This document shows positions 2,533 through 44,800 of a DNA stretch of 64,000 nucleotides, piece by piece (positions within the stretch are counted from its first letter, which is position 1; each line of letters begins with the position of its first letter). Origin of the DNA: Podarcis liolepis (Eukaryota); assembly GCA_965112155.1 (NCBI GenBank), contig OZ218098.1; one strand, 5' to 3'. The notes under the pieces were generated by a model that saw only the letters and a list, made by a program, of their open reading frames with translations, searched no databases and was not told where the DNA came from. The position numbers were made by a program, and so were the translations under genes.

Positions 2533-5500
2533 GTAAGTATTTAAGAAATAAGAATAAAATGAGAGAAAACCTTATATTCTTTGCAGGTTCAGACTGAGAA
2601 ATGGCTTGTGACACTGACAAAAAAAATAAAGGTGGAAGATATTTGCTGGTGGAAGAGCCCTGAGTAGGAATGTGGAGGTGTTACATTTTAGATCACGTTC
2701 AAAGGTGTGTTGCCTCAGAACAGAAGCAAAGTCTCAGTTGCCTCTATTTGGCCTGCTCAAATTGCTGTTGACTTTTTCTTCCTTAGTGGGGATACTTGAG
2801 TGGTCTGGTCTACATGTGTAGCAGAATGAGGTGGCAATGAGTTGAAGGGTTGGAAAGGGCTGCTCAACTGTAGGCTGCACGTGGCGGGTCACGCTTAGGA
2901 ATGCTCACGTTTCTTAAAAATACCCTTTGCAAAGAGAAAACTAGCAGAGCAGTCAAAGGTCTGGGCTGGAGTCTCGCTTCAGTAGACTGCTTGCCCTTTA
3001 AGAATAGTCAGAGAAGAATAGTCAGAGATTACTTGCAGTCAGAAGTGATACCGACCATTCTATCTCCTGGGAATTATACCAACACATCCCATCTCTTTCT
3101 GCTGTATGTGTGCAGAAGTCGACCGGGCTTGCCATGCTCCTTACGCATGAGCCAAATGCTTGTTGAGGCTGAAAAAGGAGCAGCGCTTACCTACAACCTC
3201 AGCTGGAGGGAAAGTTACAAAAGGAAGAAAAAAACACCCTGAGGAATCAAGGAGGTCTGCCTTTCATTGGTTCATGACTTTTTAGCTTCCACTGCACCTG
3301 TTTCATGGGTATACCTATTTAGTGCTGTACTTATTTAGGACTGTACCTGTGCATCTACTTTCTGAGCAGGTGCTGCCATGGACTGATTTTAGGAAAATTA
3401 CTTCATAGCTATACAAATTGGGCTGCCAGGATTATGCAAAACTTTCTCCGTAATTTCCCTCAAGAAACTTGGCAGTTTGTGAGCATTTGTATCATACAAT
3501 GTGATGACAACTAAGCATTAAAATCTACTTCCTGAGTGGTAGCTTAATGTAGTGAGATATGTTAAAATTTAAAACCATTTCAGCAGGTATCCGTCTGCTT
3601 TTTTATGTTGGGAGAAGGCCAGGAGACTTTCAGCTCCATATTCCCTGATTTTCATCCAATGAACACTGCCATTTTTATTTAAAATCAGGGTATCTTTCTC
3701 CCCTGTCAAATGTTGATGTGCATCACAGTCCATTCACAAAACTTTCCCCTCAGCACTCTGCCATCTGAAGGCTTAAAAAAAACCCTCTCTTCTATAATCC
3801 CCCCCCCCTGGATTGTTGCTCAACAGAGCTACTGCTTGTGATATTTGTTGGTCCTAATGTTGCCCCTTAAATATGTGGCAGTCGGTTATATCGAAGAGTC
3901 TTTCATCTGCCGTGGTTTGACTGCATCAGCTCTACCCTTTGGGGATTCTGACTCAATGGGACAGATACAATGAGCAGGCAGGTGGAGGTGTGTGCCAAGG
4001 CAGGAATTCTGAGAGCTGCCTTTTCTTTTTCCTCTTCCCCACCCCACCCCGGCTTCAGTCGGCTAGATGCCTCTGGGGAGATAAGCCAACATGAATTACA
4101 CCAAACTCCATTCAAGGGTGGGGCTGCTGGTGGCTGGCAGAGGGAAGGCAAGCCTTTAAAATAGAGTTTGAGTTACACCACCACCTTTGGGTGGGTGGGC
4201 AGGACAGCCCATCTCTCAGACATCTGACATCACAATGACATCAGGATTAACAGGTGGATTGTCCCGCCCACCTGTCAAACAGTGTTGAACTGTTGAACAG
4301 TGTTCTGGCCTGGTGGACCAAAAGGGCTCCCCACCCCTGTTCTCTATGGACCACCTTCCTCCACATCTTCCTTTCTGAATGCTCAGTCCATCACCTGAGC
4401 TCCAGATTCCTGGGCTGTCCAAGGAATAAAACTTACTATTGTCACCTTGGTAACAATACGCCATTTGGAATGATGCCCTCCTGGTTGAGATTCATGAAGA
4501 CATGATAGTTTATGGCTTGTTTAATAATATGTGTATTTCATAAAATTTATATACCACATGACTGTAGAAAGAAACCTCAAACTGGTTTATAAAAAAGGCA
4601 ACACAATAAAATTGTTACTTAAAAAGTTAAAGCTGTAATTTAAAACATACAGGAAGTTAAAACCACAATAGAATAGACGGAAACAAACTTTCTAAGCCTC
4701 TGGGTAGGTTTGCCCAAATAAGAATGTCTTCATCAGGCACCAAAAAGAATACAGTGCCTGCCTGATATCAAGAGGCAGGGGGATCCAAAGTGTTGATGCT
4801 GCCGCATGAAACCATTGAATACTTACAGATGCAGAATGGGTACTATGCCCATTGACTGAGGAGCTCGACTGGGCACATGTGGGGTAAGGCAATGTTGTAG
4901 GTAAACTGGTCCCAAGTTGTTAAGAGCTTGGCAGCAAATCAGTAACCAGTGCAGAAGGCTGTCAGCTGAAGAATTTTTACTGTTGTGATTATGTTTCCTT
5001 TGTTGTTTTTCTGCCTTCATTTGTTGCTTTGTTGGCTTTTGGTTATATGAATTGCTGCTTTTGTTGATTTTTTAAAAAATTAATGGCTGTTTCATGCATG
5101 TAATGAGTATGGGTTGCTCGTGTGTAAGTTGCCGCCTCTCCTGGCTATGTTGCCTGGTTAAACCTTTCTGTCTGGACAGCCCTTCACTTCGTGGCTGCCT
5201 CAGTCGCTAGCAGAATCCGTCAGTGGGCGTTTCTTAAACCTTTTCCAACATAAAAGTTGTTTGACGCCAAGTCTCCTCCTACTCTCCCTGCGCAGAAGTC
5301 TTCTGCACAGGGAGGGCGTGGGTAGTGGAGGACCCGTGCTCTCCCCGCTGGTGTCCGGTGAAGAGTCCTGGAGCCCTCTCGCCGATTCCCCCATCTGCCC
5401 CCCTTTGTCCCTGGTGTTGCGCTGATTTGCTTCCCCATCTGCGGAGCTGCCTCTCTCCCTGCTTGGCCCTTCTCCAGCATCATTTGAGAGCCTTCCCTCC

Positions 5501-11239: not shown

Positions 11240-14200
11240 AAAAAAAAAGAGGCCCAAGAGTTGATTTGCCATGTGCTGGTGTAAATTAAATAAGAATTAC
11301 TTGCAGGCTGTGTAGCAATATAAGAAAATATGGGATTTTCACTGATCCTCTAACTGTTCAATTAGAATAATATCTCAAAAACTATTATAGAATTAGTTTA
11401 AAATTTACCAGTGCTTTCAAGGATTGAGACTCCCTGGGGAACCTTCTATGGAAGCCTGGCTTATTTGAGCCTAGAATGAACTTAGTTCACTTATTTATTT
11501 TATTATTTGATTTATATACTGCCTTTCATCACAAGCTCTTGGGGCGGTTCACAGAATAAAATACAAGGTAGTAAAGGTAAAGGTACCCCTGCCCGTACGG
11601 GCCAGTCGTGTCCAAATCTAGGGTTGTGAGCCCATCTCACTTAAGAGGCCGGGGGCCAGCGCTGTCCGGAGACACTTCCGGGTCACGTGGCCAGCGTGAC
11701 GAAGCTGCTCTGGTGAGCCAGCACCAGCACAGCACACGGAAATGCCGTTTACCTTCCCGCTATAAAGCGGTCCCTATTTATCTACTTGCACTTAGGGGTG
11801 CTTTCGAACTGCTAGGTGGGCAGGAGCTGGGACCGAAAGACAGGAGCTCACCCCGCCATGGGGATTCGAACCGCTGACCATGCGATCGGCAAGCCCTAGG
11901 CACTGAGGTTTTACCCACAGCGCCACCCGCGTCCCAAAATACAAGGTACAGTGGTGCCTCGCAAGACAAAAATAATTCGTTCTGCGAGTCTTTTCGTCTT
12001 GCGATGTTTTTCGTCTTGTGAAGCACGGTCCGTCGCAACTGCGCCTCTTCAAGCGGCTTTAAGAAAAAAGCGCAAGATGTTTTCATCTTGCAAAGCAAGC
12101 CCATAGGGAAATTCGTCTAGCGAAGCAACGCAAAACCGAAAAACCCTTTCGTCTAGCGAGTTTTTCGTCTTGCGAGGCATTCGTCTTGCGGGGCACCACT
12201 GTAAAACACAAGTAAATAGTTAAAAGAAAACCAACAAACAATAACCCCCCTCCTACAAGCACATTTAAAGGGCTGTAGAATATTAATCAGGCTGGTTGAA
12301 AAGGAACTAGGAATTTAGGAAGTTATGTTTTGCTGAGTCAGACCACCCAAGAGGCCTCAGGCAGCAGGATCCACAGGAGCAGTAGCTCCAGCCAGTGGTG
12401 GAGGAAGGGGGGCGGTGGAGGTGGTCTGCCCCGGGTGTCATCCCCGAGGGGGTTGACATCGCCACCCCCGCCCCCTGGGACTCCCACCGCTCACCATGGG
12501 TGGCATCCCCCAGGACGCTCGCCGCAGGCACTGCCCTGGCTGCTGAAGCAGCTAGCTGCTCCTCTGGCTCCAGCTGCCAAGAAATGCAGTGCCTTCTGCT
12601 GCTACTGCTGTCACTGCTGCATGCTCCTTGGAGACCCATCTGCCGCCTCCTTGGCAGCGCCTCCCCACCCTGCTTGCCACCTCTGCAGTGGCCTCTTGGC
12701 AAATAGGAGGCTCAGCTTGTCTCCCCCACTCCTATGGGGCTGCTGTCTGGGGTCTCCTGGGCTCTGCACCTGCCCAGTGTGACTCAGAACAGGCCCCTTT
12801 CAGCCCTGCAACAGCCTTTGACTCCACTTCAACCATCGGTGAAGGTTGCTTCGATTCCCCCCTTGTTCCTGATGTAGATCTTCACTCACCCCTTCTTCCC
12901 TTGTAGTGGTTTTGTGGTTCGTCTCAGGTGCCCAAATTGCTTGGGCTGGCCGTGAGACTATCGGTCCAATTGGTCTAGCCAAGTATGATCTACACTGGTG
13001 AGCAGTAGCCACTCAATGTTTCAGACAGAACTTTTTCTTTCAACCTGGAGATGCTTTCTACCTGAACCTGGGATTTCTCTCTGCAAGGCAGATTCCCCAC
13101 CACTGAAGGCTAGGACAAGTATGACCACAAACAAATAAGGTTTCTAGTGATTATTGGTGAATGCATTGGATTCTGGTAGAAAGAGAATTGGAAAGCTGAT
13201 ATTTTATATATGTGTGTGAGTTGCTTTGTTGAACAGATTTTCCTTTTATGCTACTGACATACACTTTTAACCATTTAACAAGGATTCACGCTGCCCCTGC
13301 TTCTCTCTCACAGGTTTGGTCACTCACATTAATTGCATGGCCTGTGTTTTTATTCATCCTTATGGCCATCATACGAACCAGATTTCCTCCAGAAGCCCAG
13401 CCAAACTGTGAGTAACTTGACCCCCCTTTAAAGATGGATATGGGTTTTGTATTGTTGTCGAAAAGGCTCAGGTCCTTTATGTTTAGAAGCTTTAGCTATT
13501 TGAAGATAACTATCATTTCTCCTCTCAATCTCCTCTTTTCTGGGCTAAACGTACCCTGGGAAGAAAAAGCTTTTAATAGTTTCTTAGATACCATTGTCCC
13601 AGAAGGGTGTTTTCTGTCTACTGCAACCTCTCCCCAATCTGCCTATTGTCAGCAAAGTCAGGTGCCCAATTTTGTGTGATGGGGACTTTATGCACTGATT
13701 CTAAGCATAATTTGGGAAGTGTAGAGGTGCCACACCCTCTCCTTTTGGATGACACCGGCATGTGTGTGAAATCAAAAACGCTTAAGAGATAATCTGAATT
13801 TACTATATTCAAGGTCAGGTTGGTATAACCTGTTTGCTGGAATGTTTCTTAATACTTTCTTCAGCATCTCTCTTTCAATTTACGCTCACATAGAGCAAGC
13901 TATTTATTTTGCAGGCTCACCTAGAATTGTAGGAACAAGGAACAGTGCCTGTAGCAGCATGAAACTAGTTGAACAAGATCCTTCTCCGGTTAGCTAATAG
14001 TTTCTGGTCTCTGCATCATATTAAAAAAAAGAAAAGAATTAGCAATTGTGCAATTCAATATTGAAGTAAAACACTGTACCAGAATATTTTTCTAACTAAT
14101 CCTACACTTAATCCAAACTGACATTGTAGAACTTAGTCTCAATGGTCACTGCTAGACACTTCCAGCATTAGCTGCAGTTGGGGAGTTTAACAGGGACAAA

Positions 14201-17200: not shown

Positions 17201-20200
17201 ATAGTGCAGCACTAGCCCAGAAACGTCAAGGGCAGAAGTAAGAGATTTTAGCTATGTTAAAAATAGAAAAGAAGACATGCAGTTTTTGTCCCAGTGAAAT
17301 ATGTCACTTTGAAAATAATTTCCTCAGAACTTATACTTATGTAAAACTCAAGCTGGTGATGTAATTTCTATTTTCACTGTGGGAAAATATCATTCCAGAT
17401 ACTTTATAAGAAGGAGAGTGGCACAGAGCTGCCTCAACACTTTGCGTCTCCAGGGGCAAAGTACCCCCACCTCCATTCTCCTCTTCCTCCCCACTGTCAC
17501 CAATACTTTCCCCTCTCCTTTCTCCCTGATCTGCTGTTGTGCCAGGGCTATCCATGCCACACTGAGGAAGGGGTCCTATCAGTGTACCACCGTCATTTTG
17601 CTGCGATGGTGGCAAAGCTTGTAAAGTTAAATTTTAACAGGATTTGCCTCTGTCATGGCTAAGGGGCAATGGCACAGGTAATCTCCAGGGTCTCCTCACC
17701 TACACTGCCTGACCCCCAGGAAGGGGCACAGATCCAAAATATGTTACCCACAGGAAGGGGCTAACCCTCAGGAAGGGGCACAGATGGGGGCACAATCCAC
17801 TACCTATCCTGAACCTCTACCTGAGTTGTCCATCAAGGTTTAAGCCCTGCGGTTCCAAAGTCTAATTTATGTACGTTATTTTCAGGATATGTTCATTCAG
17901 AACTTTAAAGCACTCTGCCACTGGAATAATCAGTTCCCACCTATTATGTGCCAATCCCTGCCCTCCCCCACCCCCAACTCTGTATCGAGGAAACTCAAAT
18001 TCACTGTCAAATTTAAAATTGTCCTAGTTTATGTACTTTGTGTTGCAGAATTATTCTCAGTTTTTGAGTTTTTAGTCAACAAGTGTACTATAGTGGCGTG
18101 TAGTATGGGGTATGTCAGGACTTGCAAGGCAGCATGTGCAGGAGAACTTATGAGAGTGAGATACGAATGGTATTGGACTCTGGACAGTTTACAGTGAAAG
18201 TTAAAACCATATCATATGGAGAAAAAATACATCAGTTCAATGTATAGAACAGAATAAAACAGCAGCTGAATAAAACCAAAGTAAAACCCGAAATGGTGAA
18301 TAAAAACACCAACACGTTATTCTGGCACTTAGGGTAGAAAACCTCACAAGTACCTCACTCTGGTTATAAAATAAATAAAAGAACTATCACTTTGCTACCC
18401 TTTCATGATACCCATATAACCAGCTGCCCGAGGTGGTTGCCTCACTCTGCCTAATGATAGAGCCAGCTCTGAATGCTATGCAATGCAATACTGGGACCTT
18501 GCTCTCTACAAAGAAGTAAATCTGTGCCCAGGCTATACCAGCTTACAGATCTATAGATAGAAAACTACCATGTATTTAAAGAGATACAATAAAGAATAAA
18601 TTTCCAAGAAGGGTTAGAAATATGAACAGCAGTCAAAAACTCTACTGCAAATATATACAATTAATTGGGTGGCATAAAAAGGATATGCAGCAAAAAAAAG
18701 AAGAAAAAGAACAATGGAGAGGTGGAGCTGGAAGCCCTTTAAAAGAAATAAGAGAATGAAAATGTAAGATGTGTATACTAAGTTTGTGAACATGCATAAA
18801 TAAAAAATTAAAAAGGAAGAAGACTAGTTTTCTGTGTCCACCTGCATTCTAAAATAGTACAGCCTAGAGGGAGATTTACTGTCTCAGTGAGCGCTAGACC
18901 CTAAGCCTCATTGTGAAGATAAGGGTTTGGGAAACATGCTTAAAGATTATGATTTTCAGGACCAAGAACAGGATGTGTTTGAAGGCTCAGTTCCATTCAT
19001 TTTATTTTCAACCTCAGTTGACAGCCAGTTTTAATTTCTTAGATCCGTCATACTTTACTAGATGCTAGAAAACAGATCCTGAAATTATTAGAAGTACCAG
19101 AATGGAGGAGCGAAGGAGCGTTTTGGAGGGATTGTTTCTCTCAGCCTCTAAGCAAGAGCACCTGACTTTCTGGGGTGCATGAGAAACTTTGCGCAGGAGG
19201 AAGCCCTGGGTGTGAGGTGCAGGGGGAGGGAAATGTAGGTCTCTGCTTCTTCCACAGCATCCCAGAGATCAGTGAAGAAATTTGAGTATGACTTGGAATT
19301 GATCTGGGTGGTGTGGGCAGAAAGGCAGTTCAAGCGCTGTGGTGGCAAGGAGGGGAAGGCGTTTCTGGTGCTTGGAAAGAAAGATCTAATCAGGAACATA
19401 CTCCCTTGCTTAATGTTGGGAAGATGAAGATTCCTTTAAAAATCAAAATCAATTCTAATAATGATAAAAAACACCCTTTAAAAACAAACATTTGTGATCA
19501 ATAACTGTGAAGAAAACCATAGCTAGTGTTACCTAAGTGTGTTACCCTCCTAAAGAAGAGTTGTCCAGCCTAATGCTCTCAGGTGTTTGGATTATACTTC
19601 CCATTATTCCTGACCATTGTCCATGCTGAGCAGAGCTAATATAAATAGCCTGGAGGACACTAGCTAGAGGAAGGCTATCCCCAAACATGGCGTTTTCAGT
19701 CTTAGGCAGAACCCAGAACATATTGTCTGTTGCCATGTTTTCCATTGCTAGTGACCAAGGTGAGTTTCACCCTCACAGTACCAATGTGGGATATCTCAGC
19801 TCCGCATTTGTAAAGTAACAGGTTGTCTGAGGGATTCTGTGTCTGCTTGAATAGCGGCATAGGGGTCATTGACTCGGGTGCAAAATTGTTAGGTGCAAAA
19901 CTTCAACACTGGGTGCTGCCTTAATACAGGCGTGTGCTTCTGTCACCGGGTCCGTTGAAAACAGCTTCTCCATGAGAACCAGGAAGTGTCAGCTTCGTTC
20001 TGGAGCTGATAGAGGCTGGGAATGAGGCCAGAGAAAGAGAGAGAAGAACCCTGGCATGTGGGAAGGAGGAGGGCCAGCCTAGCCACCTGACACAGAACAG
20101 AGAGCAGGCAGCATCCCTGAGCATAGTGGACAAGGAAAGGGGCGCCAGAACAGAGATACACAAACTAACAGTTTCAGCTCAGAAACAGAGGGAGAGAGGC

Positions 20201-32800: not shown

Positions 32801-35800
32801 TTTCACTACTTGTATATTTAATATACAAGTCATTAAGAAGCTGCAAACAATAGTGAATTCCTGCTGCAAGTGCATGCAGTGGTCAGCTATATGTTCCCAC
32901 CCTTGAACTGAGTTCAAAAGAACCTCTTATTGGAATCATCAGATTAGGTTTTTAAAATTTGATTTTCCGTAAGAGTCTGCTTTCTCCTGTTGTGCCTTCA
33001 TCATGTTTTATAAGGGCATCACCCAGCAACTCTTATTCGTTCTGATGCTCTAGGGCTAGTAAGGTACAGTGGTGCCTCGCAAGACGAAAAGAATCCGTTC
33101 TGTGATTTTCTTCGTCTAGTGGTTTTTTCGTCTTGCAAAGCAAGCCCATTGACGGATTAGCGGATTAGTGCTATTAGCGGCTTTTAGCGGCTTATCGGCT
33201 GATCGGATCAGCTGATAAGTGGCTTAGCGGCTTAGAAAAAGGGGGGGAAGGGAAAAAAACCCGCAGGAACTCGCAAGACATTGTCGTCTTGCGAAGCAAG
33301 CCCATAGGAGATTCGTTTTGCGAAGCACCTCCAAAACGGAAAACTCTTTTGTCTAGCGAGTTTTCCGTCTTGCGAGGCATTCGTCTTGCGGGGCACCACT
33401 GTACAAGCCTTTGGCATACTTCAATACTATCTGGGAGCCCAAGCCTGTACCACAGCTTCCCCTTCCTATCTGGGAGGTTTTGCAACTGGTAGGGCAAGAT
33501 CACAAGATCTCCTAGTCATGGAACAGGTTCATGCAGGTCTGTAGTTCTCGACTCACAGCAGCATCAGCAAATGAAGCAAACCTCCACACCCCGTATATAG
33601 CTGGGCTTTCTTGAGGTTTAGTATAGAAACATTTAAATTTTCAACCAGGCCAAATTAATATTTTTACTACTAGTAGTAGTATGGTTTGAAACATGTGTTT
33701 CAAAAAGTACAATACTTTTACAGAACAGTAATAAAAAAACCAAACCCAGAAAGGTGTGCCCCTGAGCTGAGGAATGTGTATTCAGTTCATCACATGTCTT
33801 TACTTTCAGTACGGGATGAGAACAAAGGGGTTAAGCCAAAAGCTACTGAGGAAAGGGTTTTGTAAAGAGTGACTTGAAGTAAGTATGGAAGTGGGTCAGC
33901 ATTACATAGGTGATCTGGGAGTAAGTTCTGGGCACGAGGAACAGCAATCAGGAATCTTCTCTCCTGCCTAGTTCTAAAAAGATATCTAGAATGACAAGCG
34001 CTGAAGTCAAAGAAGTGACTAGTAGCCAGGATGCCTGCCCAAGTATGGTATCACACACACATACTTTCCCCACAGAGCTGCAGTTTGAAGTTGTTTCCCT
34101 TCCTCCGTTGTGAGCGAGCTATGATTAAAAGAGAACTGGCGTCCTGTGAACTGCTCTATCTATCTATCTATTCCTTTTAAAAGTTTCATTTTTGTTTTAA
34201 GTTGCAGCAAGATTCTCAGTACCAGGTGGCTTTTGTCAAGGAAACAGTTTCGTTCTTATCGCTCATCTCCCAAGTGCAGAATGAAACTTCTCTGTGGCAC
34301 ATCCTCCTGATGGCCCCAGATATCACTCAAGGTGTCAGTGCTATGAAGGATATGATTGCTGCCCTTCAGAACACAAGCAGGTAAAAGAAAAGGCAAGCTA
34401 TACACCAAAAACATAATAGCTATGCCTGGTATTTCGCTGACAGTGATGAAGTAGTAGCTTCCACTGACAGTTATAAAGGGAGGTGTTATGAAAGGAGAGC
34501 ATGAGATTTCAGTGGCTCAGCAGTAGACTGGTTTATTTGAAGGTCTAGGCTGTGTACATGGACTTCATCTGTAGTGCTTGTTTGATTAAAGTGATTTTAT
34601 TGTTCTTGGTGGTACAGAAATCTTTGTAAGGAAATAAAAATAACTAGTGTTCAAATGGGGCAGTGATGATACAACAACATCTAATACAACATTGTATTAT
34701 CAATTGTTATATCAAAGGAGCTAATAGAATAACATAGTGAGAGAAATGAATGTTTATAACAGAAAATGCAAAAAATTAAAGCAAAACAAACAAACAAAGG
34801 GGCAGTGATGATTGCCACATAGAAGTGTCTTAGGGAGGGAAACCCTGACTATTCGGAATTCATAGACTTCATGGCATTCATTTTCATCCTCCCCTTTATC
34901 TCCATTTCTTACTACTTTGGGAGTAGGCCGTCTGCTTGCCATTTTGTTTTCCTAAAATGCCCTAGACATTGTGCAATTTCTTCCCTTACACTACCTAGCT
35001 ATTTACAGGAAGCAAAGCTGTTTGATGCTCTATAATATGCTCATTCTGTGTTACTATTGCTTTATTTCCCCTGTTTACAAAGAATTATTACGGCTGTGGA
35101 AAAGGATTCTCCACTAGTTGCAAGTGACAATGGACTGCAAGCCATACAGAACATGATTAGTGGTCTGCTGCATGCCTTGAACTGTTCAGAGCAAGGTGAG
35201 GCCCCTTGCTTATCTCTTTATCAGGCATCTAAGTAATATTGATGGACAAGTTTAAGCTCTTGCAAATCCATACTTGTTGCATCATACAAAAAATGTTTTT
35301 TTGCTTCAGTTTATAACAGACACTAAGATGCACAAAATAATGAAATGCTTACTGCCAACAGAAAATAGAAGCATTTTTTTCATAAGTTATTCAAGGCCTT
35401 GTTGATGTGTTTATTCTGATAAACGGAAAAGATTAATAGTCATTAGAGATACTGGGATGGTTTGTATGTAATGTTTATGGCTTAAGAGAGCCAGGAAAAG
35501 GGTCTCTTCTCATCTCCTCCTGATACATGCCATCTTTGGCACATTATTTAACCCAGAGTTCATTTTTTTCAGAAACAGGTAACTCTGGTTTCATGTCAGT
35601 TTACTAACCAGGATCTTTAAACGTGGTTTATTCTTGGATCTTGTTAAGATCCTAGTTAGTAAGCCATCATCACCCCAGTGTTCCCCATATGACACACTGT
35701 TTGAAGCAAACTGGGACAGAAGTGCTGAATATAGTTTTGGGATGGGGAGAAATTTGTTTCAGTTTTCATGTCCTAATTGATCAAATTTGCACTTTCCAAA

Positions 35801-38800
35801 ACACAGCCATACTTCAAAATTCACATTTATTGTGGATTTATCTTGTTTATTTTTATTTTGTAGATAATAGCAGCTCAGCAATGAATGACATTTGTCAGCT
35901 CTCTCTTTACTGGAAAAACAACCCAACTTTAATGACTCAAATGAAAGACATTGTGAGGTGAGAGTAATAAATTATTTATGGGGTGAAAGTTAGGTTTTTG
36001 CTAATGTGAAATTTTATTCTGGGGGGGCAGTGGGAAGGGGGCTTTGCAAAAACTGCATAGCTTTCACTGGATCATATGAACATTTAACCAGCAACTGCTG
36101 TATTGTTGAGGCAAAGCTGGTCGATTAAACTCATAACACACTGTGGATTTTAGGGGGAAATGTATCCCTGAGAGTTAGTATTTGTGTAACATTAACATAT
36201 GCATGATTCCTCAGAAGTAAGTCACCTTGGCCGAGATTTAACTAACCAGCTCCATAAATGGAAGCCTTGAACAAGGGTTTCTGTTTGTGCGCTAGGGCTT
36301 TCCTTCCTCTCCTCTTTCGGCAGGCCCTGTCCCTCAAAACTGGCTTTCGGGTGTATGTGTGAGAATTCCCAGAATAGTACACAAAGGGAGGAGAGGGGCT
36401 TGTTCCATCTAGCAAACTGAAATGCTTGTGTAGAGGGAACAATTGAAAGAGCTTGAGGTTGAATTCTACCCACAGTGTTTAGCGGGCTTACTCCCAGCTA
36501 ACGGTGTATAGGATTTCAGCCACAGTGACAGAATCCATGACACATTGGTTGTTCTCAGATGTAGCACAAAACTATGGCTTAAGGTTTATATGCACAAGTA
36601 TTGGGCACATGCACTTCCTTCCTCTCTTCCTTCAGTGCAGCCGTGAGGTGGGAATCAACCCTTCGCTTCTGCTTTTTATGAATGATGATTTGTTGTTCTA
36701 TGCAAGCCTAGAAATGCTGCACCATTCAGAAACTGATGGGCGTGGACTTCATTCTTCAAGCAGAAGCAACATATTGTTTACTGAATTTTAAAGAATTACA
36801 CATTTGCCATGGCATAAAGACTGACACGTTTATTCTGCCATGTTCTAGCTTGAGGGGGCATTATTGTCTTTTTGTTATTATGTTATGTATTTTGTGGGGG
36901 GTTTGTGTGTTTTATGTTGTAAACTGCCCTGTGATCTTCGGATGAAGGGAGATATATAAACTGGATAAATAAATCAAATCATTTGAATTTGTATTTCTGT
37001 ATTTTTGTTCTCATTTCAGAAAAATATTACCTCCAGATTTTGCTGGTGAAGACTTCAAAACGCGTAATCTCTCAAAGGATTTAGAAACCATTAAGAAGTC
37101 TCTACATCTTTTTGAAGTTTTACCAGAGAAATTTAGCATTGCTGAACTGAACAACCTGTTCAAGCAATATGAGAATAACAGTGGAGTGAACTTGACTGAT
37201 ATCCTTCAGTGGCAAATGGAGGCTGGCAGAGACAGTAAATTAAGAGGTGCACTTAATAGGAGAGAAATCAACCAAATCAACAACTTCACATCTCTCCTGC
37301 TTCAAAATGATTTTAATAGGCTGCACTTGCTTGATATAATGGCTCACTTGAAAGAAAGTAAAAGTGTTCCCAAGTTTAGAAACATTTGGAATCAAACATT
37401 TTTAAATAAGACTAATATTATGGTCACAAAGATATGGCAAACCATTAAAACGATAAATTCTCACAAATTATCTTATATGCCTGAAAACCTTAGAAGGTAC
37501 TTAGCATCAGTCCAAGATGTGCCATCATTGTTTTCAGATTTTCTGTTTAAACCTACGACTATTTACAACTTTCCTGAGAAGTTCTTGACACTCCAGAAAA
37601 TCTTAAATATTGTAGCAAATGTTCAGAAAAGTCATAATTACTTATTGCTATCCTTCATTATTGACAAGATGCAGGACATTCAAAATTTCATTGGTGAATC
37701 TCATTGGAATGAATTCAATCATTATTGGCGTATTACAGAAAAACTGAGGTCTGCAAAATGGAGTGATACAGATATCGTTGCCTATGGGCAGGTTTTGGAC
37801 ATATTGCACAACAATCTTCATGTTCACCACAATGGCTCTGGCCTTCCTTTGAAAAAGGAGCTTGGGCAGCTGACCAAATTTGTGAACCATTTAATGAAAG
37901 AATACAGTGAGGAGAACATCAGTGGGGCAAATGTCTCAATGTTTTTAGATGCTACTCTGAAAACTCTAGATGTACTAGAAGACTTGGAGGAAAGGTACAT
38001 CCATGAATTAATTCCTGTTAATCCACTAAAGGATGCCAGCAATGAAACTGTCCAGAGATTGTTCCAAATATTCAAGGAAGGGGTAGATATACTTTCTGAT
38101 CCTAGGCTGACAGAATCATCTAGTATTAAAAAATTGGATACCCTCTTCAGTTTTTCACGCATGTTACTTTTGCAGAAGTTGTATAGGACTTCAGCACAGC
38201 ATGATTCTTCAGGAGAAGCAAAAGTACAGGATCTTTTGTATTTAACATTGACCCCTTTTCTAAGGGAAGACAATCGGGTTAATGAAAGACTGCAGAACTG
38301 TACTGTCAAGGATGTTCATCACATTGTTCTTGAAGTGCTGTTGAATAATGCCACCCTACTGGACACCTTAAGAGGAAGCAGCTGCCATTTCCTCTTTACC
38401 GCCACAGACTTGGAAAACCAAACAGCCCACCATCATACATTTACTGAGCGGTTTCAGCTTGTGATAAGAAATTTAAAATTGATGCCAACTTTTCAAAATC
38501 TCCACAAAGACAAATGGAAATACTTTTCAGATGAATTTCAGTGCTTCATCAACTCATTACAAGTTTCGTCAGAGTTTCTCTCCAAACTGAACTATTTCCA
38601 TAGCTACAAGAATCCCTGGATACAAAAGATGCATAGACGTCTAACAGCCATCTCTAATGAATTCCACCAAAGTAATCTGACCTGCCAAGCACCATGGCTT
38701 GGGCTTATGGACATTATAAATGGACCTTCTGCTCTGCACATTTTAAGCCCTTTTATTGTGAATGAAACAGAACCTCGTGCACAAAATTTATCTGGCAGTG

Positions 38801-41800
38801 TACCACAAGCCCTTGCATCTTTTATTTTGTTACAAAATGAGCCCTATAAGAATGCCGCTGTATCAAAGATATTAAAAGTGAGCAAAAATGATGCAAGTCA
38901 ATCAAAATGGAAGAACTTATCAAAGGTATTGAGTGAAGTTGCAAATATGTTGAGCTCCAATCAGAATGTGACAAATGCAAACCAGTATGTTCGACTCTTG
39001 GACATGACCAGGAAAGCTCTACTTCTCGTTGGCGCAGGACTGGCGCCTAATAAAACAGAAGCTCATCTGCCCCTTGAGACCTTAAGTTGGCAGATGAAAG
39101 TTTCCTATTTAGAAGACATGCTTGCTTCATTAAAATTATTCCTAAGTGAAACCTCTGACATAGATTTCAAAGCTCATTTAGAAATACTTTTTAATAATTT
39201 GTCTACACCTGTTGATGTTCTTGCTCAAAGCCTTTTTTATATGAACCCTCACTGGAAAGAAACCAAGAAGGCATCAAACTTAAGTAGAATGACTTGGAAT
39301 CTGCTGATTTTAAATGAGACTAATTTTAAATTAGCAACAATATGGGAAGATATCAAAAAGGTGATCTCTATGGCAAATCCGCTCTTTCCTGAGGACGTGA
39401 AGCAGGACTTTGATGCAACACAGGAAGCCCCATTGCAGTTTTCAGATCTTCTGCTTAGATCTAAAAGCAGAAAAAACATTTTGGAGTACTTCTTAGCACT
39501 TTTGAATAAGTATCGTTTTACAGCAAGCATGAGCGTGAGCCACAATGCCCCCTTAATGGCGTACCTTTCAGGAATAATGCAAAAAATCCAAAACACCACA
39601 AATTTATACACACAGGATAATGGTTCTGATACTCTTTTCAGTGCAGAACTGGAGGAACTGACTAGACACTTATCCCACATTACACAGAAGTTTACTGAGG
39701 AAGACTCACAAAGCAGCAACATCTCAGAAGTAATCGATGTGGTCCTCAGGAATCTGTTGTTACAGAAAACTTTTGAACACCAATTTAACACCAGCCAATT
39801 AGAAGCAACCCCTCAGTTGGTCTATGATAGCAATAAAGCCCTCCAAAGGGTATATGACATACTGAGGCAAGGGAGAATAATGCTTTCTGACAGCAGGCTG
39901 GAAGAAGAAACTGCTAAAGAAAAAATTGCTGCACTGTATGGTTTCTCACACTTTATCTTTCAAAAAGAATTTAATGAGTCTTTGTTAGGGCTTAGTACTT
40001 TAGCGGAAGCAAAGATAATAGATGTCTTGCATTTATCTCTGAGTCTTTTCTTAGATATTGGGAACCATGGAGCTGGAAGGCCACATAACTGCAGTGTCCA
40101 AGATGTAATTCACGTAATACTTCAGATGTTGTTTAAGAATGCCACTATCCCTGAGTTCTTGAAACAAAGTCATTGCGAACTACCTTTTACTTCCAGGGAC
40201 TTTGAAAACAGAACAATGCCCAATCAAACATTTACTGAATTGTTCCAGGACTCAATAAGCAACTTAAAGCAGACTCCAGAATTAGCAAGACTTTACAAAA
40301 ACAATAGTGAATTTTTGTCAAGTGCATTGCTATGCATCATCAAATCACTACAGTTTTCTTCAAGCCTGCTTTCAAAAATGGACGCCCTCTTCCATTTTAA
40401 ACATCCATGGATAAGGGACATTCATAAAACCCTAGCAATAATCTCTAACAAGCTGCCCCCAAATGATTCAACTTGCCCAATCCCTGTTCTTAGTGATACA
40501 AATAATACAGTCAACTATGATCCTTTGAATCTTGTCCCGCTTTTCTTTGCCAGTGAAGCAGAATTTTATTCACAAAATCTCACAGACAGCTTAGCTGATG
40601 GGAATAATTTGTCAGTGTTTTTCAAGCTATTGCAGGATAGCCTTCCTTCAAATGCTGCCATAAATGAAGTGCTTCAGATTGCCAGAGAAGCTGTCCACAG
40701 CCAATCTGGATGGAAGACTTTTTCTCATATCTGGAACGTGTTTCTCAAGTGGAACATTACAGAAGTTGAGTATGTGAAGCCTGGCTTGAAACTAGTGGAA
40801 AGAGTTCTAGTCGACAATGAAGTACCTGATGCCAGTGTTTTTAAAAATGTTACATTTTTGAATTTACTGAAGGAGCTAAAAGCAGATGTGAATCTACATT
40901 TTCTTCAAGACAGAACCAATCTGGAATATCAGCTTGACCATGTTGCACCCCCTTCTGTCATGACCACTGAAATGCTTCTAAACAGAATACTGCTTCAGAA
41001 TGAACTGGTGCAAACACTGCCTCCAAGCAGTTTGATTGGACGGTAAGTGGTCAGTTTCATAATTGTAACAATCTGTTGTTGAACTCAGCAGTTCAAAGAT
41101 TATTCAGCCTTGTTCTCAAATAGAGTTGGGTGGCCCCTAAATATCAGAGAGCTGCCAAATAGGGAGCTCGCTCTTCCACTCAGGCCCTGCTTGCGAGCTC
41201 CCCATAGGCATCCAACTGGCCACTTTGAGAACAGAATGTTGGTCTAGGTCAGCCATAGGCAAACTCGGCCCTCCAGATGTTTTGGGACTACAACTCCCAT
41301 CATCCCTAGCTAACAGGACAGGTGGTCAGGGATGATGGGAATTGTAGTCGCAAAACATCTGGAGGGCCGAGTTTGCCTATGCCTGGTCTAGGTGGGCCTC
41401 GGATTTCTCTTATGCCATTTTAGGTGAAGGCTGGCCCACCCATGAGGCAAGGTCAGGTGGCAAATCTGAGCCCAAGTTGCACACCACTTGCCACCATTGC
41501 ACCATCACTGACTCCTCCTGTGTGGGGGTGCACCACTGCTGCTGCAAGCATGCCCTGCTGCCTCATCTGCCATGGGTGGCACCCATGGAGGTGGTCGTGA
41601 CAAAGGTGACAGGTTTTGCCTCAAGCAGCAAAAGATCCTGGCCCGGACCAGATACATGCTTTAGTATTTAAGCATGGGATAAACAGTGGCGTAGCGTGGG
41701 GGGTGCAGGGGGGCCCCTCCGCACCGGGCGCAACATCTGGGGGTTAGGGTTAGGGGGCGCAAATCCACGGGTTAGGGGGCGCAAATTACTTGCCTTGCCC

Positions 41801-44800
41801 CGGGTGCTGACAACCCACGCTACGCCACTGGGGATAAAAACAATGTCTTGAATCCAAGGACCACACAACTCTCCCTTTTTGCTGAACTGCAGAAAAAATG
41901 ACTGCAAGCTTATGGGTTCCTTCAGAGCAGCCTTTCTGGAGGCCTGGGGGCAATTGCACCAGAAGGAGAAAATCGGCAACCTCCCCAGCACAAGCAGAAC
42001 TACATTTCCCTCATACTGGAGATTGAAACTGTAGTGTTTGACAAAAATAAGAGGGAGGGGCAGAGAAAGGGGGGTGCGGGCCGCCCTGGGTGTCACCACT
42101 GAGGGAGGTGACAAAATGCCGGGTGGCACTCACCGGGGGGCCTGCAGCAGACCTAAGCCTTGTGTCTCTCCTGGGAGTGACATGGCGGCTTGGGCTTACA
42201 CAGGCTTTGCACTGCCCAAACGATCTGCCCACTGCCTCCCCCCAGCTGTAGGGTGGCAGAGTGGGAGGAGGCAGGCAGACTCTGGAGCCCCGCAGTGCGC
42301 CCCACCCCATGGGTGGCTCGTCCCACCCTCGCCCTGCCCCCATGGGTGGCTCGTCCCGCCCTTGCCCTGCCCCAATGGCCGGCTTGCTTTGCCCCAGACG
42401 CCTGAGCGGCTTCCTCCTCCGCAGGACGGGGGGGGGGTAAATGAATGCACAGCATCTTTTTCTAAAAAAGAGGCTGCGAGATCCAGGATAATAGCAGTTA
42501 CCAAGACAGGAAAAATATGTAAACTAGAGGAATCTGTGTATGTGTCAGTGATTGAAATAATTGTTGCAGCCCAATCTTAAGCTTGCATATTAAGACACAA
42601 GTTTGACTGTTTTTTTTTTACTGTGGGACTTCCTTCTCAGTAAGCAAGTTCATAATTGTTGCCTGATGCCCTAATTGTGTACTTAAAGCTGCAATCCTAA
42701 ACACACTTACTAGAGGGAAAGTCCTATTGAATTGAATGAGGCTTATACATGAGCCAACTTGCTTTGGGTTGCATTTGGTTTGGATCAATGGGTTAGCTTG
42801 TCTCCTGCTCCCAGCCTCTTAGCCTAAGACTTGCACTTGGACAGGCCAGGGAGGATCATACTGAAGCTGGTGAGATTTCTTAAATCTTTGAAGTTTAGAC
42901 AGACTGTAAGTAACGTAATAAGTGAAGTGTCATACAGAGAAATCTGTTTAATTATGGCTACTATCCCAGATGGTGTATCTCTAAATTTGTTTTACTCAAG
43001 AAAGTTGAACTCTGCTGTCTCATTTGGAAACTAGGAAAGCTACTATGTGCAGTGTTGTTTAAAAAATTTACCACCCTCATGTAAAATTCAGCTGAGCTGT
43101 CTGGCTTAAGCTAATTTGGTCTCACCGAATCAAATATAAGTGGGCTACAGATACATTTTTTTAAAGGATTTCTATTTCACACCATTATGTAATGTTTGCT
43201 GCGGCATACTTAAGAAGTCGGAGCATTCCTTTCTTGTTCTGTTTTTTTGTTCTAGGTTTCTGTTTTCGGAATTTGAAAATGTCTTCTTACACATGTCCCC
43301 CAATAATGTCTTCAGATCGTACTTGATTTGTGTATTGAATGTCTCTGAAAGGCTGGAAAGTGAATTTTCAGGTAATGTATATGTTGATAGTGGCATACAA
43401 TTTACAGTGATACCTCGGGTTACATATGCTTCAGATTACATACGCTTCAGGTTACACATGCTTCAGGTTACAGACTCCGCTAACCCAGAAATATTACCTT
43501 GGGTTAAGAACTTTTATTCAGGATGAGAACAGAAATCGCACGATGGCCGCACAGCAGCAGCAGGAGTCCCCATTAGCTAAAGTGGTGCTTCAGGTTAAGA
43601 ACAGTTTCAGGTTAAGTACAGACCTCCAGAATGAATTAAGTACTTAACTTGAGGTACCACTGTACTCGTTTTTGAAACTTCCCTTTATGGATGGCTGAAC
43701 ACTTTTATGTATGAACGTGCCATGGCTGGCTGTGTACACCCCATACATTCAAAGCTGATTATCCTCTGTAAGGATTCTGGAAACTGTAGTTTACTCCTAT
43801 AGAACTAGAATTCCCAGGACCTTTAATAAGCTACAGTTTCCAGGATTCTTGGGGGGGGGAGGAATGTGCTTTAAATGTATGGTGTGTAAGCAGCCTTGGA
43901 CTAGCTGTTATCCATAAGATGAACTCAATATATGTTCATTCATGTATGCATTTATGTATATGTGCAGAGAGGGAGGGAGGGGAGTGATAGGATTTCCATT
44001 TTTGTTTTTGCAAAAGCCGCAGTCTTGATTTTGGGGGTGTCTGCTCAATATCACCCTCCCCTATCTGCATTTCTACATGCAGGGAAATGGTGGTGGTGAA
44101 GATGATGATAGTTGGATCTTCATAGTCATCTTGGTAGCCTATAGGGCAAAAAAAGTACTAAGAATGCTTGAAATAAATAGACAGACAAGTAATTGTTTGG
44201 TTTTTCTGTACAGGAAATGCTGACCTTCCTCCAGGCTTCGCACAGCTGAAAAAGGTTATTCTCACTCCCCGTGATACTGACAAGAAAGATCTATCAGTTA
44301 CAGAGATCCTGATGCGAAGAGTGAGTAGGCTTATGATGCTGGCTGATTGCGTGGTATGATTGCGTGGGCTTGTAACAACTGTTATTAAGGCCTAGGTCTG
44401 CCCAACGTGAAAGTGTATTAAAAACCAGAAGACTACATTCCCTAGAGAAAAGCAGCTTTGGGAGGGGAAACCTAGCACAGAAATGGAGCAGGAATGCATC
44501 TCACCGTTCCTCACCTGCTGCTTCTCTTTTCCAAACCTCTCTTCCCCCCATTGCAAACATACATATAAAATGCAAATGGAGAAACTTTTCCAGCCCCCTT
44601 TATTTCTACACCCTCACACAGCCCTCTTTATCCTCCTTCCAGTCAAGCAGAAGGCATTATCTGGGTTCAAGGACATACTCAGGCAACACAACAAAAACAA
44701 AGACCACGCAAGGAGGGTGCAAAGCAGGGCTTCTGAGCCATGTTGTCTGTGGAGTGGAGGTGTAGTTGGTGAAGGGGCGTGGCATGAGGACAGTAGAGAG

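Follow-up and report, generated by a model that had tools for sequence, protein, structure and literature searches.

What does an unusually long, uninterrupted reading frame in a lizard genome encode, and to which gene does it belong? We examined 64,000 nucleotides (nt) of Podarcis liolepis DNA (NCBI GenBank assembly GCA_965112155.1, contig OZ218098.1), a stretch that we refer to as the window. On its + strand, where all the features described below lie, a stop-to-stop frame runs from 36973 to 41043 (1357 codons) between stop codons at 36970-36972 and 41044-41046, and it is by far the longest in the window. An earlier note on this DNA had described the frame as two ancient tandem copies of a folded module that carries an invariant signature of four cysteines and matches no recognised family. 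Here, we conclude that the frame is one expressed coding exon of lacertid-lizard ABCA12, made up of a remnant, two tandem modules of ~620 amino acids (aa), and a 37-aa tail. Mammalian ABCA12 transports glucosylceramide in keratinocytes and is the harlequin ichthyosis gene. The earlier note mentioned neither the membership of the exon in ABCA12 nor its presence in the RefSeq models of many species. Taken as a whole, the explanation that we favor (an ABCA12 exon, tandem modules, a composite unit, and a luminal role) has, in our estimate, a probability of about 0.8.

ABCA12 of gecko, cobra, Podarcis, and hummingbird gave 17 to 21 ordered tblastn matches over the window, and most of the Podarcis ABCA12 exons matched at 92 to 100% identity. 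The exons, which were mapped one by one rather than as a joined spliced protein, reach from the N-terminus to approximately residue 2260 (gecko residue 2257), inside extracellular domain 1. Judged by these matches, the window contains the 5' half of ABCA12. The translation of the giant exon is 95.4% identical to residues 331 to 1667 of the RefSeq ABCA12 of Podarcis raffonei, 89% identical to that of Zootoca, and 69% identical to that of Rhineura; the exon is already in the RefSeq models of dozens of species. The full-length relatives have the usual ABCA core of two ABC_tran domains, ABC2_membrane_3, and the ABCA1-type R1 domain. With the gecko exon region as query, a word-based search returned 22 proteins of ~3500 to 4000 aa from squamates and one hummingbird, and the named ones are ABCA12. 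Our first guess had been ABCA13, which we dropped because every named full-length relative is ABCA12; our assignment to ABCA12 over ABCA13 is based on RefSeq names and on 70 to 80% identity of the first nucleotide-binding domain (NBD1) among tetrapod ABCA12 models. Because the giant exon is located past the first transmembrane helix, its 1341 residues fall in the first extracellular (luminal) domain.

The giant exon spans 37020-41042 (4023 nt, 1341 codons including two split ones). Its acceptor is strong, with a polypyrimidine tract and ttcag/AAAAAT at 37020, and its donor (GGACG/GTAAGT after 41042) is consensus; the stop codon that closes the open frame falls within the donor site. The first base of the exon is codon base 3 and its end is codon bases 1 and 2, so the exon starts and ends in the same phase and its removal would keep the reading frame. 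Sequencing runs of several related species contain this DNA, and RNA from one sister species (two RNA-seq runs and two small RNA-like contig runs) was mapped over positions 34150-40140. Reads and contigs join 34380 to 35083, 35195 to 35864, and 35957 to 37020, all with GT..AG introns, and one 4.8-kb RNA contig runs from 35898 across the last of these joints and unbroken to the end of the mapped stretch. The RNA depth within the giant exon is similar to that in the small exons before it. The first mate of the paired reads is on the minus strand, which, in most stranded libraries, indicates + sense RNA. Up to 40140, then, the giant exon is included whole in mRNA, and there is no internal splice between the copies. 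The donor side of the giant exon and the next exon (~43256) lie beyond the mapped stretch and are placed by homology.

Within the exon, the two halves are clearly related. Comparison of 37186-39060 with 39061-41043 gave 166 identical residues in 534 (31%), 51% positives, and 239 bits (BLASTP E 2e-74). When we ran the self-alignment against shuffled controls, the Smith-Waterman score was 676 compared to 48.9 ± 7.4 in 200 shuffles (z = 85). The exon encodes exactly eight cysteines, at nt 38299, 38383, 38542, and 38683 in the first copy and at nt 40090, 40174, 40333, and 40474 in the second. The spacing is C-x27-C-x52-C-x46-C in both copies, and all four cysteine pairs are offset by exactly 1791 nt; the tryptophan codons at 38617 and 40408 also stand where they had been reported. 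The earlier reading of two tandem, diverged modules with matching cysteines was therefore correct. Tandem Repeats Finder reported no DNA-level repeat in the exon, because the copies are too diverged.

Using BLASTP and a profile hidden Markov model (HMM) of the module, we divided the exon into four parts. The first is a 56-aa leader (37021-37188), a weak relic of an older, incomplete copy of the module, which gives a faint trace at module HMM positions 236 to 279 (independent E-value, iE, 2.4e-5); the same place in birds and turtles matches HMM positions ~220 to 333 far more strongly (e.g., iE 3e-17 in hummingbird). Module copy A (37189-39060, 624 aa) is orthologous to a clade of squamate A copies, and module copy B (39061-40929, 623 aa) is orthologous to a clade of squamate B copies; this copy B is without ~38 aa kept in copy A and in the B copies of other squamates. 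The last part is a 37-aa tail (40930-41042) that lies outside the module HMM, is found in orthologues, and links copy B to the rest of extracellular domain 1. The length difference between the copies had been described as an extra segment of ~40 aa in copy A. The segment is real (37702-37821, seen as an alignment gap), but it is better read as a loss from copy B: it is missing from the B copies of lacertids, Rhineura, and skinks, and it is a deletion there because gecko, iguanian, and snake B copies still hold it. This segment also resembles a W-rich motif near the C-terminal end of the module (~38890-39010; hhalign probability 79.5%, E 1.5e-5, 56 columns), a likeness that hints at a finer internal periodicity of the module. 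When its N-terminal half was compared with its C-terminal half, hhalign gave just the 56-column motif match, too little for the module to be regarded as internally duplicated.

Conservation of the module is concentrated at particular positions. All four cysteines are intact in 180 of 200 near-full module copies, from lungfish to birds, and in a 48-copy alignment 23 columns are conserved in at least 90% of copies. N-x-S/T sequons are also abundant. The exon encodes 38 of them; composition-matched shuffles have 14.8 ± 3.5, and none of 2000 exceeds 26. The enrichment is 2.6-fold, and this excess fits a luminal, glycosylated domain. Given the conservation of the cysteines and a luminal location indicated by sequons and topology, we infer that the four cysteines may form disulfides that would brace the domain. 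The pairing that we would expect is C1-C2 and C3-C4.

We modeled the module with alignments built from whole proteins, in which each row contributes its B copy only. The model of the whole copy B (37 aligned rows) is all-helical, with a mean predicted local distance difference test (pLDDT) of 51.5 and values of >70 for residues ~260 to 475 only. The C-terminal sub-domain of copy B modeled alone (39808-40512, 235 aa, 53 rows, AlphaFold2) has a mean pLDDT of 80.5, a predicted template modeling score (pTM) of 0.79, and ~12 helices. In this model, the four cysteines fall just before helix 6, just before helix 8, within the long helix 11, and in the coil after the last helix. The corresponding sub-domain of copy A, placed 1791 nt before the modeled one, is at 38017-38721. 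The claim of a folded domain thus holds, as a prediction, for the cysteine-bearing ~235 aa, which are confidently predicted to be all-helical, and it does not extend to the low-pLDDT N-terminal half.

The module matches no recognised family in Pfam or among PDB sequences, and no PDB fold above noise, as had been proposed. In Pfam-A, no family reached its gathering threshold; the best matches had E-values of 0.057 to 0.17 and 12 to 14 bits, compared to cutoffs of 22 to 27. Searches of PDB sequences and the ESM Atlas gave no match to the module. Foldseek against the PDB, with the whole-copy and sub-domain models, returned nothing at E ≤ 0.001, with TM-scores of ≤0.24. With VIA-align against 48,161 chains, the highest Z was 7.4 with the whole-copy model and 5.8 with the sub-domain model. 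A best Z of 7 to 8 is typical of this tool for helical models without a true match; both values are below its helical-model noise level, and the whole-copy value is a generic four-helix-bundle match in the low-confidence N-terminal half. Saposin, apolipoprotein, and ABCA extracellular-domain folds, suggested for comparison in the earlier note, were not among the listed Foldseek and VIA-align matches to these predicted models, and a distant structural relation to one of them may exist. Globin-like folds recur among the weak sub-domain matches (Z 4.5 to 5.8, ~118 residues, root mean square deviation ~4.3 Å); however, these are below noise and the module is without a heme-binding signature, so we do not count them as a match.

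To follow the module beyond lizards, we searched 1.84 billion representative proteins with a two-copy HMMER profile, which returned 11 matches in all. Those with a gene name are "glucosylceramide transporter ABCA12" or "ABCA12-like" (gecko, Komodo dragon, axolotl, and frog); the others, none of which has a gene name, are a cobra model, passerine fragments, and Logan reading frames. Every match from a named organism is from a squamate, bird, or amphibian. Local HMM profiles, iterated over several hundred long ABCA12 models from length-filtered searches, add turtles and lungfish. The ABCA12 models concerned are long: about 3980 aa in birds (some about 3350), 3350 to 3950 aa in turtles, 2994 to 7546 aa in frogs, 5222 to 5436 aa in salamanders, 2989 aa in a caecilian, 7012 aa in the African lungfish, and 4241 to 6087 aa in ray-finned fish. 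Squamates, birds, and turtles have two full copies and an ~100-aa fragment of a third at the exon start, amphibians have one to three recognisable copies amid other, more diverged units, and the lungfish has three module copies.

Copy number, which runs from one to at least three over the family, also varies among gene models within groups. ABCA12 models of ~3350 aa with a single copy are found in chicken, zebra finch, and some turtles (Carettochelys), while quail, guineafowl, and green turtle have two; the single-copy models may have truly lost a copy through unequal crossing-over, or they may stem from collapsed assembly or faulty modeling. In the snake Pseudonaja, the model of isoform X2 (3174 aa) contains one hybrid module in which the N-terminal part of copy A is fused to the C-terminal end of copy B; this could come from splicing inside the giant exon or from an error in the model. 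The ABCA12 models of Bombina (7546 aa), Protopterus (7012 aa), and Pelobates (~6800 aa) exceed ABCA13 (5058 aa), described in reviews as the largest ABC protein.

Mammalian ABCA12 is the same gene as that of the lizard, and the window exons flanking the giant exon match ABCA12 orthologues in order. The human protein is 2595 aa (PMC3293240, PMC3209647), and the proteins differ in that the 1341 extra residues of the lizard all come from the giant exon: lizard ABCA12 is ~3915 aa, and 3915 - 1341 = 2574, close to the human length. Judged by this length, with no mammalian sequence compared, human ABCA12 is too short to carry the module.

Ray-finned fish share only one half of the module with the other lineages. 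That a non-mammalian ABCA12 exceeds the human protein in length has been published for zebrafish, whose Abca12 is 3634 aa compared to 2595 in human, with N-terminal insertions; the paper mentions neither a domain nor a repeat (PMC3209647). The whole-module profile gave no match in teleosts. A jackhmmer search started from a sturgeon match linked the module's N-terminal ~300 to 350 aa to abca12 units of sturgeon, paddlefish, and teleosts, as well as to birds, turtles, and amphibians. A profile of the cysteine-bearing C-terminal half, on the other hand, matched no ray-finned fish, even with filters off. The insertions of ray-finned fish ABCA12 thus share the module's N-terminal half but are without the four-cysteine half and have arrays of other units instead. 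Because the N-terminal half occurs in ray-finned fish and the C-terminal half does not, the 620-aa module looks, from these profile matches, like a composite of an older N-terminal half and a four-cysteine C-terminal half seen only in lungfish and non-mammalian tetrapods. As for the fish units themselves, paddlefish abca12 (residues 720 to 2467) has five near-identical tandem units of 335 aa, cyprinid abca12 has six to nine units of ~230 aa (e.g., residues 1282 to 2665 of one protein), and many RefSeq abca12 isoforms of ray-finned fish differ by whole units.

The two copies were described as ancient, and phylogenetic trees show for which lineages this is true. The A copies of squamates fall into one clade and their B copies into a second, both supported at 100% and both mirroring the species tree; the A/B split therefore predates living squamates. 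Outside squamates, the description does not carry over: bird and turtle copies are closer to each other within their lineages, and amphibians and lungfish have other numbers of copies. The two bird copies group together (100%), as do the two turtle copies (99%), and the copies of birds are 65 to 70% identical to each other compared to 31% in the lizard. This grouping by lineage points to gene conversion or repeated duplication. If duplication was repeated, then squamates, turtles, and birds each came to have two copies independently, and both the groupings and the high bird identity are what we would expect. We consider such separate origins a possibility that falls short of even odds, given two further observations. 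Squamates, birds, and turtles share one layout in a single exon (~100-aa remnant, copy 1, copy 2, and tail), and the bird-plus-turtle clade stands beside squamate B, with 84 to 94% support, rather than outside A plus B. Both observations would be expected if a single old duplication was later homogenised by conversion in the stems of birds and of turtles, and the shared layout inclines us to this history.

Copy turnover is also visible among amphibians. Bombina has two nearly identical copies 1327 residues apart, and axolotl has a duplicated super-unit of 1385 aa. In the tree, axolotl copy 1 groups with copy 2 of the newt Lissotriton and axolotl copy 2 with newt copy 1; the copy order seems to be swapped between the two salamander models. 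Overall, the family evolves as a tandem array in which copies are duplicated, lost, internally deleted, and probably homogenised by gene conversion.

One further explanation would add to the ABCA12 reading, rather than replace it: the array of modules and the long N-terminal region of ABCA13 could be a single element that both genes received from their common ancestor, and not something invented in ABCA12. The extracellular domain of ABCA13 is >3500 aa and comes partly from a 4.8-kb exon (Prades 2002, as described in a paper citing it), so multi-kb exons are present in extracellular domain 1 of both sister paralogues. In all of the non-mammalian groups sampled, ABCA12 is as a rule long (3.0 to 7.5 thousand aa), and one fish abca12 model is labeled ABCA13. 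On the other hand, our two-copy HMMER profile detected no similarity to ABCA13, with no ABCA13 at E ≤ 0.001 among the 1.84 billion representatives; this is a weak negative, as the profile also missed distant ABCA12 copies in lungfish and fish. We regard a shared element as conceivable but do not favor it. The fuller scenario is more doubtful still: the ancestral vertebrate ABCA12/ABCA13 transporter carried the module array, the 3500-aa domain of ABCA13 belongs to the same family, and mammalian ABCA12 was secondarily shortened. If the array was ancestral in this way, the ABCA12 of a reptile, bird, or frog would be a tractable, repeat-resolved model for the N-terminal region of ABCA13.

Several observations weigh against reading the giant exon as a conserved, folded ABCA12 domain with a luminal role. 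The exon evolves fast, with only 52% identity between lizard and gecko and 33% between lizard and hummingbird. Among 38 classified differences from the sister species, 26 are nonsynonymous and 12 are synonymous; the rough ratio is near 0.6, indicating that constraint is weak outside key positions. The cysteine signature, earlier called invariant, is intact in most copies, but a single cysteine is lost in some (CCCF for the last copy of frogs, ICCC for Bombina, and CSCC for axolotl), and one lungfish module copy is degenerate; because such losses occur, not every copy can keep two disulfides. The module's N-terminal half is poorly modeled.

Tolerated filler, that is, a fast-drifting, largely unstructured insertion without a function of its own, would account for the fast evolution and the ratio near 0.6, the absence of the exon from mammals (by human length), the low pLDDT over the N-terminal half and tail, and the single copy in some bird and turtle gene models, but it is very improbable given a frame that has been kept open (200 near-full copies come from lungfish, amphibians, turtles, squamates, and birds), the conservation of the four cysteines and about 20 other columns in at least 90% of copies, the 2.6-fold excess of sequons, a confidently modeled C-terminal half, and the inclusion of the exon in mRNA.

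Around the giant exon, the window contains other ABCA12 exons. The exon at 34198-34380 was found with tblastn and is joined by RNA to 35083, and two small exons follow, both in the Podarcis model: 35083-35195 (113 nt), with RNA joints on both sides, and 35864-35957 (94 nt), which RNA joints show to be spliced straight to the giant exon. These two small exons have no counterpart in the gecko model, in which residues 289 and 291 flank the gap. The next downstream exon, at 43256-43385, has putative boundaries placed by tblastn with gecko and Podarcis ABCA12 and by an acceptor (ttctag/G) that fits the phase. At the 5' end, the Podarcis model has its first coding exon at 19687-19779, and the gecko and bird N-termini map to 2464-2529 and 13314-13409; these differing positions suggest alternative 5' exons or promoters of ABCA12. 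Within the intron before the giant exon, many RNA reads pile up at 36397-36428 and 36910-36949, with ends that disagree with the window sequence. These two short stretches resemble fragments of a dispersed repeat that is transcribed from another place.

How might the module contribute to ABCA12? The core pump presumably does not need it, because mammals do without it (by human length) and skipping of the exon keeps the frame. Probably heavily N-glycosylated and disulfide-braced, the module would lie on the luminal side of secretory lipid granules or at the cell surface, where the copies would lengthen the extracellular domain that forms a lipid tunnel in ABCA1, ABCA4, and ABCA7. Structures of those three transporters show that the luminal domain forms such a tunnel (review PMC13161189). 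Their extracellular domains are helix-rich, glycosylated, and disulfide-bonded luminal domains in the same topological position as the module; however, no ABCA chain was among the listed fold matches, and the module had no match among PDB sequences. ABCA13 offers a closer parallel in that the giant exon lies within the same extracellular domain 1 as the luminal extension of this paralogue, an extension needed for vesicular localisation: ABCA13 without its long N-terminal region shows a reticular pattern, is mislocalised, and no longer supports cholesterol internalisation (PMC7948424). By analogy, the module might sort ABCA12 to lipid-secreting granules or take part in lipid hand-over to granule content, our best guess, which we offer tentatively and consider less likely than not.

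Our literature search found no description of the repeat, the four-cysteine sub-domain, the variation in copy number, or the species distribution. The module is an uncatalogued domain family, not in Pfam, inside a well-known transporter. Work on ABCA12 rests on the 2595-aa mammalian protein, yet mammals are the odd ones out: in all the other vertebrate groups that we sampled, ABCA12 is far longer, at 3000 to 7500 aa. In lungfish and tetrapods, much of this excess is a repeated four-cysteine module, predicted to be helical and glycosylated, without a recognisable fold in the PDB. The new family has clear boundaries, and its compact 235-aa piece is suited to expression and structure solution. 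The module is also an entry point to the N-terminal region of ABCA13, which is just as obscure, and its presence in lizard ABCA12 raises the question of how lipid secretion for the skin barrier compares between mammals and other land vertebrates.

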